Source: Paragordius varius
Taxonomy: Eukaryota > Animalia > Nematomorpha
NCBI GenBank assembly: GCA_964247055.1
Contig: OZ176054.1
Span: 10,788,001 to 10,852,000, forward strand
Direction: 5' to 3'
Length of the DNA: 64,000 bases
Of this stretch, positions 861-46,479 are shown in pieces; within the stretch, counting starts at the first letter, position 1; each line of letters opens with the position of its first letter. The position numbers and the translations under genes are program-made. The notes below the pieces were generated by a model. It saw only the letters and a program-made list of their open reading frames with translations, ran no database searches and had not been told where the DNA came from.

Positions 861-3800
861 AATGTAAAAAATGCAGCATATGTGGTACAATAGACGCCAA
901 TTGTGATACCTTTGGTAACTGCCAATGCAAAGTAGGTTACCGAGGAGATCGTTGTCAAATCCGTAATTTCTTATATTATCCCAATATCAAAACGATAAAA
1001 ATGAAATATATTGGTCCGATTACGAATATTAAGTTTATTTTTTTTATAAAAATTTAATATTGTAGGGGTCACGGGGAAAATGGTTAGCGTTATTTACCAG
1101 TTTGGACACAATTGTAATCAAACATTTTGAAAAATAAGTACTAATATTTGGTGAATTTATGGCTAAAAGTGGATCTTAGTCCTCGCATTTTAGCCATGTC
1201 CCGCCCGAAAAATAAACAGTCCATTATATAAACAACGCAATAAAATAATAAATTATTATGTACCTTAAAAATTGCTGAACACCTATGCTCCATCAATCAG
1301 CTAATTTAGATTGAAGTTTATGATTATATAAAGAAGTTAATCACTTTTATCTTGTGAAATCGGGAAAACCTACAAGGAAAAGCAATCAAAAATAAATCCC
1401 ACTGATTAATATATTTTTTTTATATGAAGCTAAATAAGGCGGGATATAATAGCAAACAGGACCTATAGAGTTGCGTGTGGAATACCAGAGTTTGAAACTG
1501 CACAATTTTTGAATATTATATGGTCAGCCCTGGTCGGGATGATTGTTTAATTATCTCAAGTCCTGATACCATTTTAGTCCTTTTCTGCAATAAAAAGGGT
1601 GAAAGGGTTTTCATAAGCTTTTTTATTGAAAAAAGTTAAAGCTTGAAAATGTAAAATAACAAAAGAGCTCAAAGGGTTAAAACGTTTCAAATCTTGTTTT
1701 ATTTAAGCAATTATGGTTAATAAAGTTTCAAATATTTTTCACTATGCCTATATATAGCCCACTGTTTGTCGTAAAATTGTTTACTTAATTTTCAACCACA
1801 TAACTGGCGTATCCATAATGGGTGAGGAGCTATATCGAAAAAGTAACTCGACTATATTCACGGCGATCGAAATGATACAAAATGTTATAATATCATTTTT
1901 AGTTTTCTCTTGGCTAAAAGTCGGCATTTTAAATTTATATATACACATATATGTTAGCCTGTCACTGTATTCGAAATCATTCCCTTAATGAATATGATTG
2001 GTGTGGACCTCTTGGGTATTGCCGCTGTAAAACCGGATTTTATGGTAGATTCTGTCACAAAGATTGCCTGTGTCAAAAGAATTCCGTTAGTCATAGATGT
2101 GACCATAATGGACATTGTCTTTGTGCGTTTGGTTACACTGGCAAAGATTGCAGACAAAGTAATTAAATATATCACTTTAAGCTTTTTTGGATTATAAAAT
2201 AACTAATGATAGCGTGTTAAATTTTAATATACATTAGATTTAAATTAAAGAATTTTTGGAAAAACTCACCAACTTTGAAATCCGGTAAAGTTTTTTCTTA
2301 GAGAACTAATAAAGGCTTTTAAATCGAAAAAAATGGCGGTTAAGCGCCTTATAAGAAAAAAATCCAAAACATTAGATAAACATGTATTATGGCTGTGATG
2401 TTTTTAGCTAAAATGCAATTGGTTTAATTTTTTCCATATGTATTAATATATAATAAATATAAAAAATATAAAATTAAAAAAATTTTCAATGCGAAAAATT
2501 TTTGCCTAGACAATAAATTATAGTTGCTGGCTTTTAACACTTCGATTCAAATTGGGGTATTTAAATACCCCAGGCTAAAATTGAGTTAGAATTTTTAAAA
2601 AACAACTGAAGGAAATGGTCCCAATTTAAATTTATGCTTCTATCCAAGTAAAAATTATATTTGTGTTGATCATAATTCCGAAAACTATCAGGATATAAAC
2701 TCCCTTTGGAACGCTATACATACAATCTGCAGAGACACAGCCGACGAATTCATTCAGCCTCTCAAACGTACTAAACAAAAAATAAAATTGTCAACCAAAT
2801 GTCTCGAGATCGCAGAAAAACGTAGAGAATCCAAAATCAAATGCAAATGGGATGAATACAAACAACTAAACAGTGAATTTCAGAAGAGTGCAAGAGAGGA
2901 CAAAAATAAGTATTATGACCAACTATGTGAAAAATTAGAAACAGACGCCAAAAATAACCGAAACCTTTTTGCCCATGCAAACAATATTATTCCACACAAA
3001 AAAGTTTTTTACAAGGGACTTATGAGAAACGACAACAACTCAATCGTCACTGAAAAAGACGAAATTCGCAAACTATGGCATAAACACATAAGCAAACTAT
3101 ACAATGTAAATAACCCCCCGACTATTAACGAACTTACTCAACAAAAAGAACCACCTATTATGAAAGAAGAAGTGGAACTCGCGATAAAACACTCTAGCAC
3201 CGGCAAATCAGAGGGCCACAGAGACATCCCTACTGAAATAATAAAATATATTCCAGATATACTTACCAAATTATTTCAAACCATATTTGAGATGGAAAAA
3301 ATTCCTGAGGATTGGTGCACATCCATTATGATTCCGATTTTAAAAAATGGTAACCCAGAACTGTGCGACAACTATGGCACCATAGCGCTCATAAACCAGG
3401 TGTCCAAAGTTTTCCTAAAAATAATACAGTTTCGACTAAATACCATTCTTGACCCCGAGATAACCACAATTCAGGCTGGTTTTAGAAAAGGTAGAGGATG
3501 CCGAGATATGATATGTAATATGAGGTGGATAATCGAGAAACACATCGAATTTAACAAAGAATTGCATATGTGCTTTGTCGATTTTTCCAAAGCATTTGAT
3601 TCCATCCAGCACAAAAAACTACGGAAAGCTCTAAAACAACTTGGAGTGTCAACACATCTAATCAACGTCATATTCTCAATTAACTTAAAATCCACGGCTG
3701 TAATATCTACACCTCACGGTATATCTGACTCATGTAAGGTACAAGTCGGCCTCCGTCAAGGATGCGTTTTATCACCAATTCTTTTTAACGCATACCTAGA

Positions 3801-6800
3801 GTGCATAATAAGAAACATCCCACAAACTTATGGCATTAATGTAGGTGGAAACCTACTTACATCCGTTCACTACGCGAATGATACAGTCTTTTTTTAGACA
3901 GTGTAGACACATTATCGCAAGCATTGCAAGTGTTTACAACCGAATGCAATAAATTTGGATTATATATCAATTTCAAAAAAACCAAAGTCATGCAAATAAA
4001 TCCGGTCAAACCAATCCAATAATCCTCAACGGCAACCAGATCGAAACAGTAAACAGCTACACGTACTTATATAGCATTATTAACAGTGAGAACAACTCTA
4101 CGCCAGAAATAAAGCGAAGAATTCCTATTGCTAAAGCAGTAACTTTTTTTTAAAATATAACAGTATTTGGATGTCGCATGACATTAAACTACAAATATGC
4201 CAAAATATCCAAATAAAATTTTGTTTTGAAAAAAAAATTCCATGTCAAACTACTTCGACGTCATTTTTATTTTACAAAATTTTTGCAAAATATCATCTTC
4301 ATTTAATTTTAAGGATAAAATTATAGCTAATTTTCTCATTGATAGAAATGGAAAAAGCTGTTTATTTGTATTTTTTTTAATTTTACTATTGCACGCATGT
4401 CACGTTGACTAATTTTTACCTTTCGGTTTAAGCTTAAAATATGTTTTGAATAAAATTTTTTATATATTTCGGTTTATTAATGTTATATAAGTGCAAGATT
4501 TTGCCATGGTTTCGATTCCTTCCATTTTTTTATAGAATTTAATTTACAGGCCTGGGGTATTTAACTACCCCAATTTGAATCTAAGGACTAAAATGAATGT
4601 GTTGTATCCAAGTGTTAATATCAAAATTATATATGCATTTGCACCCTAACATGCCTTTTATCATCTAATTCGAAGAATTAGTATATATACAAAAGTTTTA
4701 TTCTAATTTAACTGAGTTAATAAAAAAAAGTTGCAGCTAAATAGCGGTATTCATATTTTTAGATTTTGCATTATATCTTAATATGGCACTTGACCCCATT
4801 TTTTAAGTTCATTATTGACTCTTAAAATAGAACCTTATGAATTATATATGGTATCCAGATCGGACACGCTATGAGATATTATAGCTTAAAAAACCTCACA
4901 TTTATCAAATTATCTTTTTTGCGGAACTATTTGAAAGAAGTTTATCATTTAAAAAGTTTAGCTATTTTAATTTACAATGTAGATATTAGGTAAAGTTTTC
5001 AAAACATTTGACTATTACAGAATTTCGAGCAATAGAACTATGTGACCCCCAAATATTCAAAAATTCAGAGTTGTTGAGATTTTTCACAAGAATTACCAAA
5101 ACTTTATTTCCTTTACTCAAATCAATACATTATCTATATTTGCTCTTTATAATTGTAAAATTCTAGTTTGTACATGCATTAACAACTCATGCGATTCGTT
5201 TGGGCAATGTGCCAATTCAGGTATTATATTTCAGTTCATACGTAGAAAATAGTAAACACTTAAATTGGGGTATTAAAATACCTCAGACTATATTTAAGTT
5301 GAATAAAAAATACTGAAAAAAACGGTTCTAATTTAACTAATAAAAATTAATTAATAAGTCGATATATTTAAATAAAATTTAGTTTTGAAAAATTCCATAT
5401 CAAACTACCTCGACGCCATTTTTATTTCACAAAGTTTTTGCAAAATATGGTGTATTTAAATTTAAAACTAAAATTAAAGCTAATTATTTTTTAAATCACA
5501 ACTCACATTGATAGAAACAGAAAAAATGGTTTATTATGTATTATTATTAAATTTAGCCACTGCACACATGTCATGATGGCTAAATTTTTACCTTTACGTT
5601 TTACTACAAAATAATAATTTCAAGAATTTATGAAAGAATTCTTTTTATATTTAGGTTTAATGTTATTTAAGAGAAAAATTTTGCCATGGTTTCAACTCAT
5701 TCCCTATTTTTTCAACTATTTAGTTTTAAATAGGCTTGGGATAACCAACCCATTTTGAATCGAAGGACTTAAATGAATGTGTTGTATTCAAGTGTTAATC
5801 GCTGTGGTTATTTTTGGCATAAGATTAAAACCCAAAAAATTAAATATTATAAGTGCATGCATACTTTTTTAAATGCTGAGTACAATCGCTCTTTACCTAG
5901 TAGTTTTTATATAATATAATATAATATTTTATATAGTTTAAAAGTTTAATGCGATACAAAAAATTCAAATATAAGGTTATTATTGTATAATTCTATAATG
6001 CAAAACTCACAGATTAATATTAAGCGACCAAAATCTTTACACAGTTAATTCTTTAATTCTGAAGGAATTGGATTTAAGGTTAATACATGTATTCTTGTTA
6101 TATGGTAAAATAAATCTCGAATTTTGCAGGGCTTTGTTATCTTGTGTGATTGATAAAATACCAACAAACAATCAAACACTAATATTGCCTAACTAAAATA
6201 GGCGGAAAAGGAAATTTTTAAGCAGGAATTGGAATTTTAACATTTCAAATAATTTGATTTTTTAAATACTGACAATATTTTTTGTTTTTAGAAAAATGCG
6301 CTTTGGTGGCATCTTTCATAACTTGAATTTACAAGACTTTTGTTAATATTTTATCAGAGATATATATAGGGTCATTGCGTCAATACATATATTTAACACC
6401 ACTAATGCTAATTTTATCATAAATAAGTCCAAATTCTTAAAAAAATTTATAGACCTATTTTCAGTTTTTTCTGCCGTAGAAAGAAATTGTGGTTATCAAT
6501 ATGACCATCAATTTGAGCTCGATCCTGATTTCTACTTACGTCCATCAATTCAGAATACACCCAGTAGATATGTTATTATCCCGTGGTAATTATAAATTTC
6601 GAAATTTAAATAATGACAATAATAATACTTATTTTATAATACCGAAAAAATTTCCTCTTTGAAATCCTTTCATTTACAATTATATTTTGAAAATCGAGAC
6701 GGACAAGGTCCAAAAACTCAATGGTTGTTTACTACAATCATTAAAAATCTGTAATCTTATCTCACAAACTATTGAAGATAATTGTTTTAATGCTCTAAAA

Positions 6801-9717
6801 TAACTTATTCTATCTATTATATGCTAAAATTTATCGATCATAAAATGTAGTTAGATTTTTAATCAACACTTATTAATAAATTTAAAAAAAATAAGATATT
6901 ATATCATTTCTATTCTAATATATATTTTATCGACCATATTAAACTATTCTAATTTATAAAATTAAATGAAATTATAAATAGAAATTATAAACGATATGTG
7001 AAATCCTTCGTCAATAGTAATCGCAGACTAGTTTCGTGCTTGTTAGCACTCATCAGTACGACACAACTATTTGACTTGGAGTTTTCACATATCGATTTCG
7101 TATATATATCCAACTTTGCAATTTTGGTATAAATGCAGTTGGTTATACGAATTTAAATTAAATTTAATGTAATTTATGAAAATTAAACTGAAAATTTGAA
7201 AGTAAACTGAAAATTAACTCTAGGGGTGAGCCTAGATTTCATTACAATATTCTAATTTATGTTGAAGAGTATAAAATGAAATATTCCAATTAAAAAAAGA
7301 AATGTAACGTTTTTAACATTTTATATTGATTGTAATACCACTAAGAGGCCTTATAACTCATATTTTCCAATTCATTATCATCGATATTATTTTTTTACTT
7401 TAAAATTTAAGCCCGAATCAGGAAAAAGTTTATCTAAATAAAAAGTCATGATTAGCAGGAGAGGGTTTAATGCGGGGATTATTCCCTCAGGTAGTTTTTT
7501 TGTATTTTAAGGATGGTTCGTTTAATCAAAGATCAAGTCCAATGTTCTGGAATACTGATTTCAAGCATGTGGGTTCTTACGCTACGACGTTGCTTTATCT
7601 CACAAAATGATTTAGATGTTAGAATCGTAACAGGTGACGTGTTTGGTCAACATTGGGATCACAGTGAACATATCTATGGGATCTCAAAAATTAAATTTTT
7701 TTCTGTCGGTAAAAAGCTCTTAAATAATTACTGTTTTATTGCAAATTAAAATTTTGTCCTAAATATATGACAAATTTATTTTTAAAAAAATAATTAAATT
7801 ACAGAAGAACCATATACTGGAGCCTTTCCAAGTCGCTTGGCGTTAATAAAGATAGCTAATCAAACTTCTAATGAATCAGCAAGTATATATAGTAGTTTTG
7901 TTCAGCCTATTTGTTTGCCAGACGCCAAAGTTAACGTTTCTGTCACCGAAAAAAACGATACATATTTGTTAAGTTGGTCTACGTCAAGTATAATTAAATT
8001 CTCAAGTCAATTTAATCATAGATATTAAAATTATATATTAATTTTTTTTATACACAAGACATTTTGGTGGGTTTTTTTGAAAAATAAAATTAAGGTAGTA
8101 TGCATAGTACTGTTTTGAAAGTGTTTTGGTTAAAAGTTAAATTGTTTAATCCACTTCTCCTATATTAGATGAAAAAACTTAAAATTTTTACATTTAATTT
8201 CTATGGTTCTGAATTTGGAAAGCCCCAATTTCTGATAGAAAACAGGCAATACTAAATTCATAAACATAAAAAATTTGCTGGTTAGTTGTAATTTGAAAGC
8301 TTTCATTAATTTTAATATTTTTTAACCACCTGTTGTTTTAAAAATGTATAAAAATGGCGGCGATAAAGTTGGAGATAAACTTCACAAAAATACATTTTTA
8401 AAAAAGGTTTACGTGCGCTTAAATATTTTTTGGCGCGAATTATGGAAACTAGAACCGTTTTTTCTTTTAGTGGTTGCAAGTTTGTTTAATGTCTTTTGTT
8501 GCAAAGCGCACATAATTATATTGCCCAAGTTTAAATTAATGGATTTCCTTTTGAAGAGTCTTATAAAAAGTTTTTGGTTTCGGATCCGTTTTAGGGGTGC
8601 AGAATCTCATTTTTTGGAATCGGGAAAAGTCAATGCTAAATTGATAAATATTAAATAGTGTTAATGATGAAAGATAACGTTTTGGTTAACAAAAATTTAA
8701 TTCTGCCAATCAAATGGGTGTAAACAAATTCAAAAAGCATATGATATTTTATCTGATAAAATTAATTTTTATAACTCAATCAATATAATATTAGATAATA
8801 ATTTTAAAACGTCAAAAATCGCTCAAATGACTCCATATACCATATTGACTCAGGAAGATTGCCCATATCTTGAGATGTATGCGCGAAATCATGTCATATG
8901 CGCAAAACCGTTAGTTCGGCCTTCAAGTTGTATTCAAGAGGATGGAAGTGCCCTGGTCAAAAAAATTAATGGTGATTACCTAACTTTTAGTTTCAATATA
9001 TATAAGCGCTCCATTCATGTTTTTAAATAAAAAAGTTGACTATCAAACGCCATATAAGCAACGAAACTACAGAAAATCCATATGAGCTAACAATTTATTA
9101 CTAGTTTTTTGGCTTTAACTTTTTATTATCATAATATAGAATATATTATGAACTTCCTTATCTTTAAAGTTTTATCCATCTTAAATATGCATTGCATTTA
9201 CAGTTTCAAAATATTTTTTATATGATAAACCAATTGAAAATAAAATCCGCCAAATTTTGTTAATTTTTTGATTCACTGTTAAAAAAGTTTCAATGTTTAT
9301 TGTGTGTTATTGGATGTTTAGCATACAAACACATATTAATACGAATTTAAAAACGTCACTATCTATTTTTATAATCTTAATACAAACTTTTAACTAATAC
9401 AGTAGTGTAAATTAATAAAATAACTTTGAATCAATGATAATGCCCTTTCCTGTGCATGCTATCAGGCAATAATTAATGAAAATTTATATCTATATTAACT
9501 CATAGTGTAAATTTGATTGGCCTCAACCTATAAAAGCCGCAAAAATTTACGCGGTAGAAACCTCTCGAATTATAATTTTGTTGTATTCATTTTTTATTAA
9601 ATTTTGATAGGTGTTTATACTTTGATTGGTATGTGGGTTGATGGACAATGTACATCCTATTTTATCAATGTTCGTCACTATACATTCTGGATTTACAATA
9701 CAATATTTATGGAATAA
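861..9717 (+). CDS. EGF/laminin-EGF-like repeat protein with C-terminal inactive trypsin-like serine protease homolog domain (5' end unresolved)
   Basis: Phase-compatible GT-AG exons: 861-962, 1958-2158, 5167-5220, 6480-6585, 7512-7708, 7805-7987, 8795-8971, 9611-9717 (stop). The first exons encode CxC..C....CxC..G[YF]xG..C repeats. The later exons give PWMVRL..CSGILISSMWVLTLRRC, SRLALIKI, FVQPICLP, CIQEDGSAL and GVYTLIGMW..VRHYTFWI, colinear with the S1A trypsin fold. An in-frame ATG at 788 with a hydrophobic stretch could be the start, or upstream exons may exist. Confidence 0.85.
2538..4614 (+). mobile_element. piggyBac-like non-autonomous element (family PB-MITE, ~550-580 bp) carrying a 1.5-kb RTE insert
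   Basis: TTAA at 2534-2537 and 4615-4618, CACTT..AAGTG termini, and subterminal inverted repeats CGATTCAAATTGGGGTA. The flanks 2538-2660 and 4193-4614 join to reproduce the uninterrupted copy at 23198-23773. Confidence 0.85.
2661..4192 (+). mobile_element. RTE-clade (BovB-like) non-LTR retrotransposon fragment, reverse transcriptase region, inactive
   Basis: ORF 2788-3897 contains QAGFRKGRGCRD, CFVDFSKAFDSI, GLRQGCVLSPILFN and HYANDT (YADD changed to YAND). The frame is open from 2662. After frameshifts near 3890 and 4020 it continues GLYINFKKTKVM..NGNQIETV..EIKRRIPIAKA..SIWMSHDIKL. There is no endonuclease domain and no 3' tail. Confidence 0.92.
5257..5794 (+). mobile_element. PB-MITE copy (left end degraded)
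   Basis: Colinear with the 2538-4614 flanks; ends AATGAATGTGTTGTATTCAAGTG followed by TTAA. Confidence 0.8.
6992..7094 (-). ncRNA. Minimal type I hammerhead ribozyme (Penelope/retrozyme-like), intact core
   Basis: The minus strand reads UCGUA-CUGAUGA-GUGCU(AACA)AGCAC-GAAA-C(UA)G-UC^UGCGA. It has both conserved core boxes, a 5-bp stem II, a 2-bp stem III with palindromic ACUAGU, and a GUC cleavage triplet (cut between 7026 and 7025). Stem I extends to CGAUAUGUGAAA/UUUCACAUAUCG. Confidence 0.9.
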
Positions 9718-16108: not shown

Positions 16109-17567
16109 GTTAAACAAAAATCAAACCATCAATATATCTCAAATTATTATAATGAAAAATAAGGACGATTAAATGGATTGAGAAACAAGATTTAAAGTAT
16201 ATTAGTACTAAATATTAAAAATAATTATCTTAATTTACACCATATTTGCATCATTTTTGTGTGCTTTTGCTAAAAAAAATATATAGTTCACATAAGAATT
16301 GGGCGGATCAAATGAAAAATATTGGTGTCCACTCTTAGTCAAATTAGGGGTAAACTCATAAATCCATAAATTTTTTAGAACATAATAAAAGTGCCATAAT
16401 GTTAATATTATTTACAAGAATAAAAATCAACATTCTCAGTCACCAAAAAGAAAAATTTAATTTGAAAAGCAATGAATAAATATATGTAACAAGTTATATA
16501 GAGTATGAATGGGTTAAGAAAAATTTTATTTATGAATATATATTTTTCCTATTTTTAAATTTTGCATTAATCTCAAAAAATTACTCATTTTTAATAAATT
16601 ATTCATTTTTTAAATTATTCTCTATAAATCCTATTGTCTATTATAAATGAAATTCAATAATATTTATTATATAAATTTATTAATTAACTACTTTGCATCT
16701 GAGAAAAATTCACTTTCATAAACAGTTTATTATTATTAATCCATATGGATCAATAGTGTATTTGTAAAAAAGTTTATGACCCGATATTTTTATTAAATAT
16801 TTTATGTAAACAGGTAAAAGGTAAATAAAGATGAGCCTTCAGTTTTTAATTGATGCCCAAGGAAAAAGGCACCTAATCTTAAGATATTGAAAAATAATTA
16901 GGTATTATAAAAAAAGCAAAAAAATTTTCATGCATAGTTAATACACGGAATCATTTCATGAAATTAATTAATTTTAGCCATTTTGAGAAAAATATCCTCT
17001 ATGACAAAAGATGACTTTCAATTGTAAATTAGGCATAACAGAACACACTATTGTTTCAGGCACCAAATTTGGACACAAAACAAGAAGTAATAAAAGTTAT
17101 GCGTTACAAAGATTTAAAAATTTAATAATACCAACTTTCCCTATATTTGATCAAAGATTTGAAATATATTACGTAAAATTTTACCACATGAAATACAATC
17201 ATCTCAATTATATTTGACACTATAAAGATTTTAATGTATTATACATTTATTAAAGACTCATAGTTAATTACTATAAAAAAAATTTCAAAGCATTTTATTT
17301 TTTAAATCGTTGTACCAATACATTTAACCTTAATCACAATAACGCAATGATACGAATTTATATTATAAATCCCCTTTCGGCAATATATTTGCCACGATTT
17401 AAAATTCTTACTTTTGGCAGAATTTATAACTTTCATAAAAATCCTATTAAAATTTTTGTAGTTAAGACAAATGCAAACTTTCCTCTATAATAACAGTTGT
17501 TTAAATCCGTAATATAATGATAAAGGATAATTAAATAGAATTAAATGAAATTATAAGAAATTATAAA

Positions 17568-17670
17568 CGATATGTGAAACCCTTCGTCAATAGTAATCGC
17601 AGACTAGATTCGTGCTTGTTAGCACTCATCAGTACGACACAACTATTTGAATTGGGGTTTTCACATATCG
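17568..17670 (-). ncRNA. Second hammerhead ribozyme copy, core mutated (GAAA to GAAU)
   Basis: Near-identical to 6992-7094 (shared block about 17539-17674 vs 6959-7098). The A at 17608 changes the conserved A15.1, so it is probably impaired. Confidence 0.75.
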
Positions 17671-18428
17671 ATTTACCATTACAATTTCCTCTATAATGTA
17701 ATTAAATATTCATATTAAACATATGCTCCCATGTATGACAAAGTTTGAAATTAATTTATACAAAAACGTTTTTTGATTGCAACGTAATTAACACAGATAT
17801 ATATACAGCATACATTTACAGGTCGGATCACATGGACAGTCAGGGTTAGATTGTGTATATTTTCCATCGATATGTAACATTTGTTAGCATTCGATATATT
17901 CAATGTAAACTAAAATATAGAAAATATCTTAAAATAATAATAAAAACACGTTTGATAGCAGAAATTTTTTTTATGAAATTATTTACGTTTGCGTTTTATA
18001 TACCTTAACGACCTCTATCATTGGTCAGCTTTTTAATCGGTTTAAAGGATGCTAGATTTACGTGTGTTTTAGCATATATTAAAATATTTATATTTAATCG
18101 TTACCTATTCAACTGTACTTGTATATAAACAATATATATTGCTTATGACCTAGTCCGCAATGAAATAAAGGCTTACACAGAACACAATAAAATATTCGAT
18201 GAAAGATATTAAATCTGATAGACACAAGAATATTATGTTGCTTTAGGTTTTAGGGCTTAATAGTGATTTAATTTTTTTGGTAAATGCTTCAGATCGAAAT
18301 TGGCAAAAATAAGGCAATAAAATAATTTGAGATCTAACAGCATTAATACAAAATATCGTTAAAAAAACTATTTTTAAAGCAAATACCATATGGGTATTAG
18401 ATCTAAAATTTTATGTTAATATTTTTAA

Positions 18429-44118: not shown

Positions 44119-46479
44119 TCAAACATCTATAAAAATGTTAAAAATAAATATATTTACAAGTGATAGATTATAAATATTTTGGATATGAAATATTAATCAA
44201 AATTATACCATCCAAAGAAATAATAAAAGAATTAGTTTTATTCTCCCTTTCGAATTCTCGGATACGAAACGTCAAATGTTCATTATCTTGTTGCAATAAA
44301 TCTAAACGGCGTTTCATGAGATCCATTTCTTCCAGCTATGAAAAAAAGAATGTTTTATTTATTACTAAAAGAGCGCGGTTTAAATCACTCTTAACCCGTA
44401 ATGTTAAAAAACGAATAATTAAAGGTAAACCATTTGCGCTACAAATAGTACTCTTTCTAGTTTCTTTTTTAAAATATTCGATTTATAAAAGGCTCAAATT
44501 CATCGAATAATTAGGTTTAAATACTGTTAGATGGTTTAAATCTATAATCGCTTTTTGGCTAATTTATGGGAACGCTGTAAATTTAAATAATTTATTGTAG
44601 GCAGGGGAAGGGGGGCTGTGTGCAATAAAACGTATCATATACATACAATTAAATAATTTCACCATAATATAATATAACTATGGTTTTGTTTAACGAAAAA
44701 AAACATTTAATACATTGTTTCGAACATGTTATTTATATTGTGTTTTTGGATTTTACATCGTGAAAGCTATTTACTAATGTATAATATTTATATTATATTA
44801 TAACATATAATTTCTAAACTAAGCTCCCGAAACTCTTATTACCTTTTGGGTCAATATTTCAACTTGGGTATTTAGGGAACGAATCTCAGAGTTTTTACAT
44901 TGGATTAAATCATTCAGATTGATAAACTCTGTCTCCAGTTCCATTTCCTGAATGTATATAAATGAAAATTTATAAAATTAATTATAATTGTGCATTATTA
45001 AACTTATTTTTTTTCTTAAACCCCTATTTTCTTTTTTATAGTCTGCTTTTTAGATAAAGTGAGAAGCCATACTTTTTTAAACTTGAATTTTTCAAGTATA
45101 ACTTATTAAATTGCAAAACATGAAGTAAAAATGTAAATTGAAAATATTAATCAATTATATATTTTATATTTGCAATAAAATGATAATAACAGCATAATTG
45201 CCTTTTACAGTCGTAATTAAAAGATATTTTCGAAAAAGAATTAATTTTTATTGGAACCATTTATTTAGATAAGAGATGTTAGATTTTTTAAACATATGTG
45301 TTCAACGAATAGTAAATTAAAATATAAAATAGTAAGTGATACTACAAAAAATATGATTATCTTTAAAGTAATTATTTAAGAAAACCATAATTATTAAAAT
45401 AAAATTGATGTTACAATTATTGTAATTACCTTTTTAACCAATATATCATTCTTCATCTTGTAGGTTAATACTTGTGCCCGTAAATCGTTACATGTGTTAA
45501 TCGCCTCATTTTTTTCTGTATAAAAAATAATGTTACTTCAATGAAAGCTTTTCATATTACAGAATGCATTTAGGCCAATTGTAACAATATTGTATTTCAA
45601 AAAACAAAATGTTGAATAAAAATTATTTCTATTTCAATTATAATTCAGCTAAAATTATATGAATTTATTGGGTGAATTTTGGATTACTACTAGTAATCTT
45701 TGTCAAACCTAAAAAATAAAATTAAAATATAAACTAAGAATTAAAGTATAAAGTAAAAATATTTAATGAGATATGAAACTAAAAAAACATGTGTGTAATG
45801 TTATTAAGAAAAAAATTTGTAATGTTATTTATACTGTTGAGATCTTTCTTTCTGTTCATTATATTTTCTTCTTTTATATAAAAACTTTCTTTCATGACAA
45901 CTTCGGTATCCCAGTTTATTTTATGTTTGCGTTTAACGGCATGATATGCCAAAGCCGAATCATTTGTTTTATTCTTGTTAACTGCCGTTTTATGTTCTTT
46001 TATCCGAACATCTAGTCCTCTTTTTGTTTGTCCTATGTATACACTGTGGCAGTCTTGAAATTTAACATACAGTTAACATAAACAAATGATTCGGCTTTGG
46101 CATATCATGCCTTTAACTGTAAACATAAAATAAACTGGGATGCCGAAGTTGTCATTAAAGGAAAGTTTTTATATAAACTAAGAAAAAAATATAATGAACA
46201 GAAAAAATCTCAACAATATAATTATCTTTACAAACTTTTTTCTTTTTTAGTTTTATATCTCATTAAATAATTTTACTTTACATTAGTTAATTAATATTTT
46301 TTACGTTTGACAAAGTTTACTAGTAGTAATCGAAAATTCACCCAATAAAATATAATTTTAACTGAATTATACTTGCAAAAGATATATTTGATTCAACATT
46401 TTGTTGTTTTTTTCGATACACTATTATAATTGCCCTTAGTTTGAAAAAAGCAACCATCAAAATGCATATTGCAAATGAT

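Follow-up and report, generated by a model that had tools for sequence, protein, structure and literature searches.

What kind of sequence carries the hammerhead ribozyme motif found on the minus strand of contig OZ176054.1 of Paragordius varius (Nematomorpha; assembly GCA_964247055.1), within the 64,000-nt stretch from 10,788,001 to 10,852,000 that is called the window below? An earlier interpretation made from the letters alone (the sequence-only reading) had placed the motif in a mobile RNA unit of ~140 nt. The analysis described here assigns it instead to an insertion of 292 nt with an 11-bp target-site duplication (TSD), located at 7247–6956 in window coordinates, and to a family whose unit measures 444–455 nt. 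The insertion is a young copy, truncated at both ends, of a non-coding retroelement family. With a probability of roughly 85%, the window copy belongs to a non-autonomous family that carries one type I hammerhead per 444–455-nt unit and whose insertions are of the Penelope-like type. The family corresponds to the animal retrozymes without long terminal repeats (non-LTR retrozymes), or non-autonomous Penelope-like elements, of the literature.

The hammerhead motif and its geometry

A complete type I hammerhead motif can be read directly from the minus strand at 7070–7014, and all of its parts stand where the sequence-only reading had located them. The distal helix (AUAGU 7070–7066/ACUAU 7018–7014) is separated by an asymmetric internal loop (UGU 7065–7063 versus U 7019) from helix I (GUCGUA 7062–7057/UGCGAU 7025–7020), which comprises six pairs, two of them G–U. 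The core CUGAUGA (7056–7050) is followed by helix II (GUGCU 7049–7045, an AACA loop, and AGCAC 7040–7036), by GAAA (7035–7032), by the palindrome ACUAGU (7032–7027), which provides the helix III segment, and by the GUC site (7028–7026), where C17 corresponds to 7026 and cleavage is predicted between 7026 and 7025. All core nucleotides are present (C3 U4 G5 A6 N7 G8 A9, G12 A13 A14, A15.1–U16.1, and H17), along with the G10.1–C11.1 pair and the GUC.

The motif is more than a chance match, and shuffles of the window put the number of occurrences expected by chance for its 31-nt core pattern at 0. In permissive mode, the Rfam model Hammerhead_HH9 scores it at 26.7 bits, with an E-value of 2e-4 over 701 nt and of 0.021 over the whole window; for members of the window ribozyme family, HH9 E-values at whole-genome scale are 0.0015–0.02. 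The pairing seen here is also upheld across two ribozyme families, as described below. On the same strand, the motif occupies the tip of an imperfect 103-nt hairpin (6992–7094), in which the open-ended helix I is extended outwards and closed by a 12-bp helix (CGAUAUGUGAAA 7094–7083/UUUCACAUAUCG 7003–6992). The folding energy of a 152-nt stretch, −41.9 kcal/mol, corresponds to z = −5.1 relative to shuffled sequences, and the layout of the hairpin is the same in the second family.

One correction concerns helix III. A stem of 2 bp, as had been proposed, would have to close a 2-nt loop, which is sterically impossible, so that in the monomer helix III consists of only one A–U pair and a CUAG tetraloop. 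As modeled, a 6-bp ACUAGU helix would be able to form only between two ribozymes. Computed structures of the isolated ribozyme are uninformative: the minimum-free-energy fold pairs part of the core, and the cofold of two molecules is a trivial full duplex. Ribozymes whose helix III is a single base pair are efficient only as dimers (PMC7229834, PMC4209133), and by analogy two ribozymes, such as those in a tandem transcript, would be needed for cleavage here; self-cleavage at C17 may be expected of the family ribozymes. The assignment to type I hammerheads with a minimal, palindromic helix III, such as occur in Penelope-like elements and animal retrozymes, holds good, and the word “minimal” applies to helix III only, since the 6-bp helix I, the internal loop, and the 4–5-bp helix II represent the canonical metazoan type I layout.

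A repeated non-coding unit with Penelope-like insertion anatomy

In the source 110.5-Mb assembly, a 171-nt query gave 46 scored matches at 91–100% identity among 407 first-look candidates. For the 31-nt core there are 220 occurrences if up to 3 mismatches are allowed (105 of these are exact), while the reversed control gave 0. Four natural head-to-tail copies define the period of the unit, with successive cleavage sites separated by 444–455 nt, and other copies extend past the window copy on both sides. Monomer numbering starts at the nucleotide after the ribozyme cleavage site, and the reference throughout is a natural copy; a consensus or repaired element sequence was never used. The unit is non-coding, with a longest stop-free run of 62 codons and a GC content of 26%, and its circular fold reaches −80.5 kcal/mol (z = −5.2). 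Apart from the hammerhead, no tRNA, 7SL, 5S, or other Rfam module was detected in it. A classical origin from a short interspersed element (SINE) is not supported, since modules of this kind are missing.

To describe the insertion anatomy, 73 arms in 45 non-redundant insertions were mapped onto the unit. The 3′ ends of 54 arms are clustered, 24 at monomer positions 113–123 and 30 at 148–168, and the other 19 end elsewhere, including the window copy, which ends at 70. A distance of ~38 nt separates the two clusters, and the extra tail is borne by one arm in each insertion. The 5′ ends are widely spread, with a cluster of 14 at 233–264 to which the window copy belongs. Twelve of the 73 arms are longer than one unit, the longest reaching ~2.4 units at a locus with three tandem ribozymes and an inverted arm. 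Head-to-head inverted pairs account for 23 of the 45 insertions, and in 21 of these 23 exactly one arm ends at 148–168, the partner ending mostly at 113–128. TSDs measure 11 bp in the window copy, 12 bp in a second window copy, and 14 bp at locus L003.

Such a combination of variable 5′ ends, partial tandems, inverted arms, TSDs, and a one-sided tail bears the hallmarks of Penelope-like insertion, for which an inverted 5′-truncated copy and a 30–40-bp tail at one end have been described (PMC8557442, Craig et al. 2021). Both of these features are found here, as are those of retrozymes and non-autonomous Penelope-like elements, namely a hammerhead-bearing non-coding unit in head-to-tail copies, together with TSDs and 5′ truncation. 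The earlier placement of the motif in a mobile element is supported; that element is a non-coding retroelement devoid of its own reverse transcriptase (RT).

The window insertion and its older relative

The whole insertion (7247–6956, minus strand; bounds taken from the TSD) is made up of an 8-nt inverted tail fragment and a 284-nt direct arm. The arm (7239–6956) corresponds to monomer 242–455 followed by 1–70 of the ~455-nt family unit and is 98.2% identical over 284 nt to a natural tandem copy, as found by BLAST. The 11-bp TSD, AAATTAGAATA, was determined as the longest common substring of both flanks; its upstream copy lies at 7248–7258, and its downstream copy, at 6945–6955, directly adjoins the 3′ end of the insertion. 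Two copies of GAAATTATAA (plus strand, 6968–6990), formerly regarded as a tandem tail, turned out to be internal element sequence of monomer ~36–58.

At the 5′ junction, 8 nt (TTGTAATG, 7240–7247, minus strand) repeat the outermost part of the tail, monomer ~148–155, in reverse-complement orientation, and the matching CATTACAA is present in natural monomers. These nucleotides may be read as a minimal inverted arm. Among the 73 arms, only that of the window copy has the 8-mer (the second window copy was outside the scanned loci), so it would be the short extreme of an inverted arm and not a rule; as a general feature of 5′ junctions, it was rejected on the same count.

With these borders, the 292-nt insertion is complete as integrated. 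It contains a single ribozyme and is 171 nt short of a full unit. A partner ribozyme is absent from its vicinity, its closest relative being located 10.5 kb away and mutated in the core. In all likelihood, the window copy is an inert insertion whose ribozyme sequence is intact. The relative is a second, older copy of the family (17488–17684, minus strand), which comprises monomer 383 to 117 at 94.7% identity by BLAST; its GAAA is changed to GAAU at position 15.1. It has a 12-bp TSD, TTATAGAGGAAA, at 17696–17685 and 17490–17479, and at its 5′ junction, between the TSD and the element, there is TTGTAATGG, i.e., the same 8-mer plus G.

A second ribozyme family with the same geometry

The genome contains a second hammerhead family with different stem sequences but the same core and geometry. 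Its helix I is also of 6 bp (GUGUGG/UCACAC), followed by a 3 + 1 internal loop, a 4-bp helix II (GUCC/GGAC) with an A-rich loop, and a long closing helix, and its helix III segment, ACGCGU, is likewise palindromic. In a 22-sequence alignment of both families, 94.4% of the cells are paired in helix I, helix II, and the distal helix, compared to 20–50% with slid partners, and 7 pairs are altered on both sides between the two families. Three helices with an open-ended helix I and with covariation are thus found, though the independent events behind them are few because they come from two lineages.

Members of this family were seen at loci L048–L064 and L067 (e.g., G000:C4:786563-787054), where inverted pairs also occur. 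One copy has A in place of C at core position 3, and in five loci (L050–L053, L055) the motif is situated inside a non-coding repeat of >2.1 kb with ~90% identity.

A long near-perfect stem such as that of the hairpin might also be expected of a small-RNA precursor (for a microRNA or hairpin-derived siRNA), in which case the ribozyme would be incidental, and the second family does produce weak matches to Rfam microRNA families (e.g., 36.6 bits, where the gathering score is 95). However, these matches are far under the threshold and reflect only the hairpin shape, and the hairpin belongs to a repeat with hundreds of copies, so that we attach next to no credence to this explanation.

Autonomous Penelope elements in the same genome

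Twenty GIY-YIG matches were found in the genome, several of them in long open frames and inverted pairs. Autonomous elements are present, as indicated by an intact 787-aa open reading frame (ORF) for a Penelope RT with a GIY-YIG domain; its relatives in databases show no more than 35% identity and have RVT_1 and GIY-YIG domains. The intact 787-codon element (L041, G000:C1, ~4914–4917 kb) is bounded by direct pseudo-long terminal repeats (pLTRs) of ~170 nt, at 6204–6370 and 8682–8855 of the locus, and an inverted shortened copy adjoins its 5′ side. The pLTR carries a hammerhead-like motif of the U3-A8 type (UUGACAA … GAAA), whose helix II is 6 bp long; this variant was described as early as 2014 (PMC4209133). 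No canonical hammerhead was found near the other GIY-YIG fragments.

Since hammerheads of Penelope elements are located in pLTRs (PMC4209133), since autonomous Penelope elements exist in this genome, and since the insertion anatomy is identical to theirs, the window copy could be viewed as a solo pLTR left behind by a coding element. The natural tandems speak against it: their whole period is 444–455 nt, with no ORF between the ribozymes. Besides, the pLTRs of the sampled autonomous family are unrelated to the unit, and none of the 45 insertions has RT-coding sequence of its own, the RT fragment at locus L011 being part of an older Penelope copy that hosts the element. A remnant of a coding element is therefore improbable, and the non-autonomous family remains the preferred interpretation. 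The L011 locus itself (544–2559; G000:C4, ~5137 kb) presents an inverted-pair family insertion that is nested in the older, decayed Penelope-like RT/GIY-YIG copy.

The window also harbors a dead Penelope-like insertion at 45677–46336. Two GIY-YIG-coding fragments are arranged there head-to-head (46078–45782 on the minus strand and 46082–46244 on the plus strand), with ~75% protein identity to the 787-aa element, and the tails of these dead fragments carry outward-facing U3-A8 hammerhead-like motifs (45677–45706, minus strand, and 46307–46336, plus strand). The pair belongs to the autonomous family from which RT might be provided in trans. Another RT-like sequence of the window is a 369-codon open frame at 2788–3897 on the plus strand, the end of which interrupts an RVT_1 domain; a tblastn comparison revealed no similarity to the Penelope-like protein, so that the frame represents a different retroelement, probably a decayed one. 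The statement that the hammerhead unit is unrelated to any RT encoded in the window is accordingly true for this frame, where it is uninformative, and overlooks the dead Penelope pair (45782–46244). Short GIY-YIG-like matches, all of them interrupted by a single in-frame stop, are situated within ~10 kb of several contig ends (C7:7794, C28:8476, C3:14411901, and C4:14188756), and these may represent a subtelomeric repeat that originated from a Penelope-like element.

Evidence weighed for and against

A number of observations weigh against the assignment to a non-autonomous, Penelope-like family. When Rfam was scanned in the gathering mode, no match was obtained, the 26.7 bits being lower than the gathering score of 52; the recommended check with Rfam hammerhead models was thus successful in permissive mode only. 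The shortfall of the HH9 score arises mainly because helix III is missing and the outer stem does not match the model. Further, the core is no better kept among the copies than a neighboring 31-mer (exact in 105 of 220 versus 65 of 147 occurrences, with ≤3 mismatches allowed). An absence of excess core conservation is as expected of dead insertions, and as a result, selection on the ribozyme can be inferred only from the comparison of the two families, with its few independent events. The loci were picked via the ribozyme region, which biases the coverage and divergence profiles, and the per-position divergence profile was dropped as evidence for this reason.

The relation to Penelope elements is weakened by a comparison of the unit with 16 loci that contain Penelope ORFs or fragments, in which BLAST gave no match except to a nearby, unrelated family copy. 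One autonomous family was sampled in this search for a mobilizing partner, and it has no detectable sequence in common with the unit. The arrays are short and do not exceed 2.4 units, whereas those of many retrozymes are long. Finally, in a search of contigs, none of the runs recorded as RNA bore the element, two runs guessed to be RNA gave zero contigs, and the runs that do bear the element are DNA-like.

Some of these points would also suit another explanation, according to which the hammerhead-like motif is a non-functional by-product in a structured repeat, similar to a SINE or to a miniature inverted-repeat transposable element (MITE), that has been amplified for other reasons. The genomic copies without excess core conservation, the Rfam score under the gathering threshold, and the lack of any RNA evidence found are all compatible with it. 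It is, however, difficult to reconcile with the presence of all core nucleotides, the GUC, and the G10.1–C11.1 pair in the window motif, and with the divergent second family, which retains the core, the helix lengths, the internal loop, and the palindromic helix III and differs by 7 compensatory pairs. The HH9 E-values also remain low at whole-genome scale, the link of the motif to such elements is well documented (PMC4209133, PMC7229834), TSDs combined with 5′ truncation are not MITE-like, and the unit lacks a tRNA, 7SL, or 5S module. Taken as an explanation of this locus, a by-product appears very improbable, and we retain the interpretation as a non-autonomous retroelement family with its own ribozyme.

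Genomic context

The nearest recognizable gene is a trypsin-like one on the plus strand, to which the insertion is antisense. The Pfam Trypsin match has an E-value of 8.8e-5 (7513–7749), and the reading frame of the peptidase domain opens at ~7452, ~190 nt from the insertion, which is located upstream of it. Upstream of the insertion, no exon was found, and a placement in an intron, assumed by the sequence-only reading, is unproven.

The exons of the gene on the plus strand are found at 7452–7749, 7837–8028, and 8827–9030. The histidine motif is replaced (LTLRRC) and the serine motif is degenerate; to judge by these motifs, the gene may encode a catalytically dead protease homologue or may be a pseudogene.

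A possible mechanism of mobilization

How such a family could be propagated may be outlined as follows. A transcript spanning at least two units would bring two ribozymes together, the palindromic ACUAGU segments sharing a 6-bp helix III. Each ribozyme would then cut after GUC, thereby freeing a unit-length RNA of ~450 nt, which might be circularized by the host tRNA ligase. A Penelope RT/endonuclease acting in trans would take RNA that is uncleaved or has been re-ligated and copy it into AT-rich targets that have been nicked, with reverse transcription beginning ~115–160 nt downstream of the cleavage site, and the expected products would be 5′-truncated, longer-than-unit, and inverted copies.

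The mapped arms provide a constraint on the template. All arms longer than ~120–160 nt pass straight through the cleavage site, and there are two fixed start points, ~117 and ~155 nt downstream of it. As cDNA synthesis starts 115–160 nt downstream and runs through, the cleavage site in the template RNA would have been intact or re-ligated. A bolder proposal is that both families are currently active retrozymes in a nematomorph-like animal and that the template is the re-ligated circular unit RNA; in this active-retrozyme interpretation, arms that cross the cleavage site and start at fixed points downstream would reflect a re-ligated circular template. We regard it as tentative and rather unlikely. 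Should it be true, rolling-circle reverse transcription by a Penelope RT would be recorded directly in the copies that the genome contains.

Irrespective of the template, the regular ends of the copies, with clusters 38 nt apart and one tailed arm, could help to explain how Penelope RT is primed and how integration is resolved. The finding does not change what is known of hammerheads or retrozymes, this kind of element having been described already, and its value lies more in annotation. The genome has several hundred unannotated copies of a ribozyme-bearing retroelement; as their scores are below the gathering threshold, a default Rfam scan misses these ribozymes, and the repeat libraries for this little-studied lineage are probably without the family. 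In our literature search, no paper linking Nematomorpha with hammerheads or retrozymes was found; the TMEM184C protein encoded in this genome has its closest match, at 72% identity, in a Gordionus species of that phylum.

Comparison with known systems

Animal retrozymes are elements of 150–450 bp with TSDs of >4 bp and with ribozymes that have a one-bp helix III and need to act as dimers (PMC7229834, Cervera and de la Peña 2020). The helix III of the window motif, with one pair and a palindromic tetraloop, resembles that of the axolotl and newt ribozymes, which cleave well only as dimers (PMC7229834). Like animal non-LTR retrozymes, the window family is non-coding and AT-rich, carries one type I hammerhead per unit, forms tandems, has TSDs of >4 bp, and co-occurs with Penelope elements. 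Its unit is at the upper size limit of animal retrozymes and is known here from DNA alone. In contrast to these retrozymes, its arrays do not exceed 2.4 units in 45 insertions, most of which are solo copies or inverted pairs.

The Sm-alpha and Sj-alpha SINE-like elements of Schistosoma and satellite 2 of newts (cited in PMC4209133) are short non-coding repeats, dispersed or in tandem, and contain a type I hammerhead whose helix III is weak. The window family has no sequence relationship with them, and the unit size and the host phylum are different as well. The best-scoring Rfam model, Hammerhead_HH9 (RF02275), has in common with the window motif the core, the lengths of helices I and II, and an A-rich loop 2; however, the HH9 members are conserved single-copy intronic ribozymes of amniotes with a stable helix III, while the window motif is borne by a repeat.

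As for Penelope elements, their pLTRs carry hammerheads, which are reported to occur in opposite-strand pairs 100–700 bp apart and to act as dimers (PMC4209133, Cervera and de la Peña 2014), and it has been argued that retrozymes are non-autonomous Penelope derivatives (bioRxiv 10.64898/2026.07.22.740005). Unlike Penelope elements, the window family is without an ORF between the repeats, and unlike the retrozymes tied to Penelope, it has no sequence link to the pLTR of the one autonomous family sampled. Its ribozyme has a canonical 6-bp helix I and a 4–5-bp helix II, whereas the “min-HHR” layout of hammerhead ribozymes, reported from many Penelope elements, combines a long helix II with a short helix I. 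The organization of the copies is that of the Penelope pLTR hammerheads: there are partial tandems, an inverted 5′-truncated arm, and ribozymes paired on opposite strands at a distance of a few hundred bp; a ~38-nt tail is present at one end only, the TSDs vary, and helix III is weak, which implies action as a dimer.

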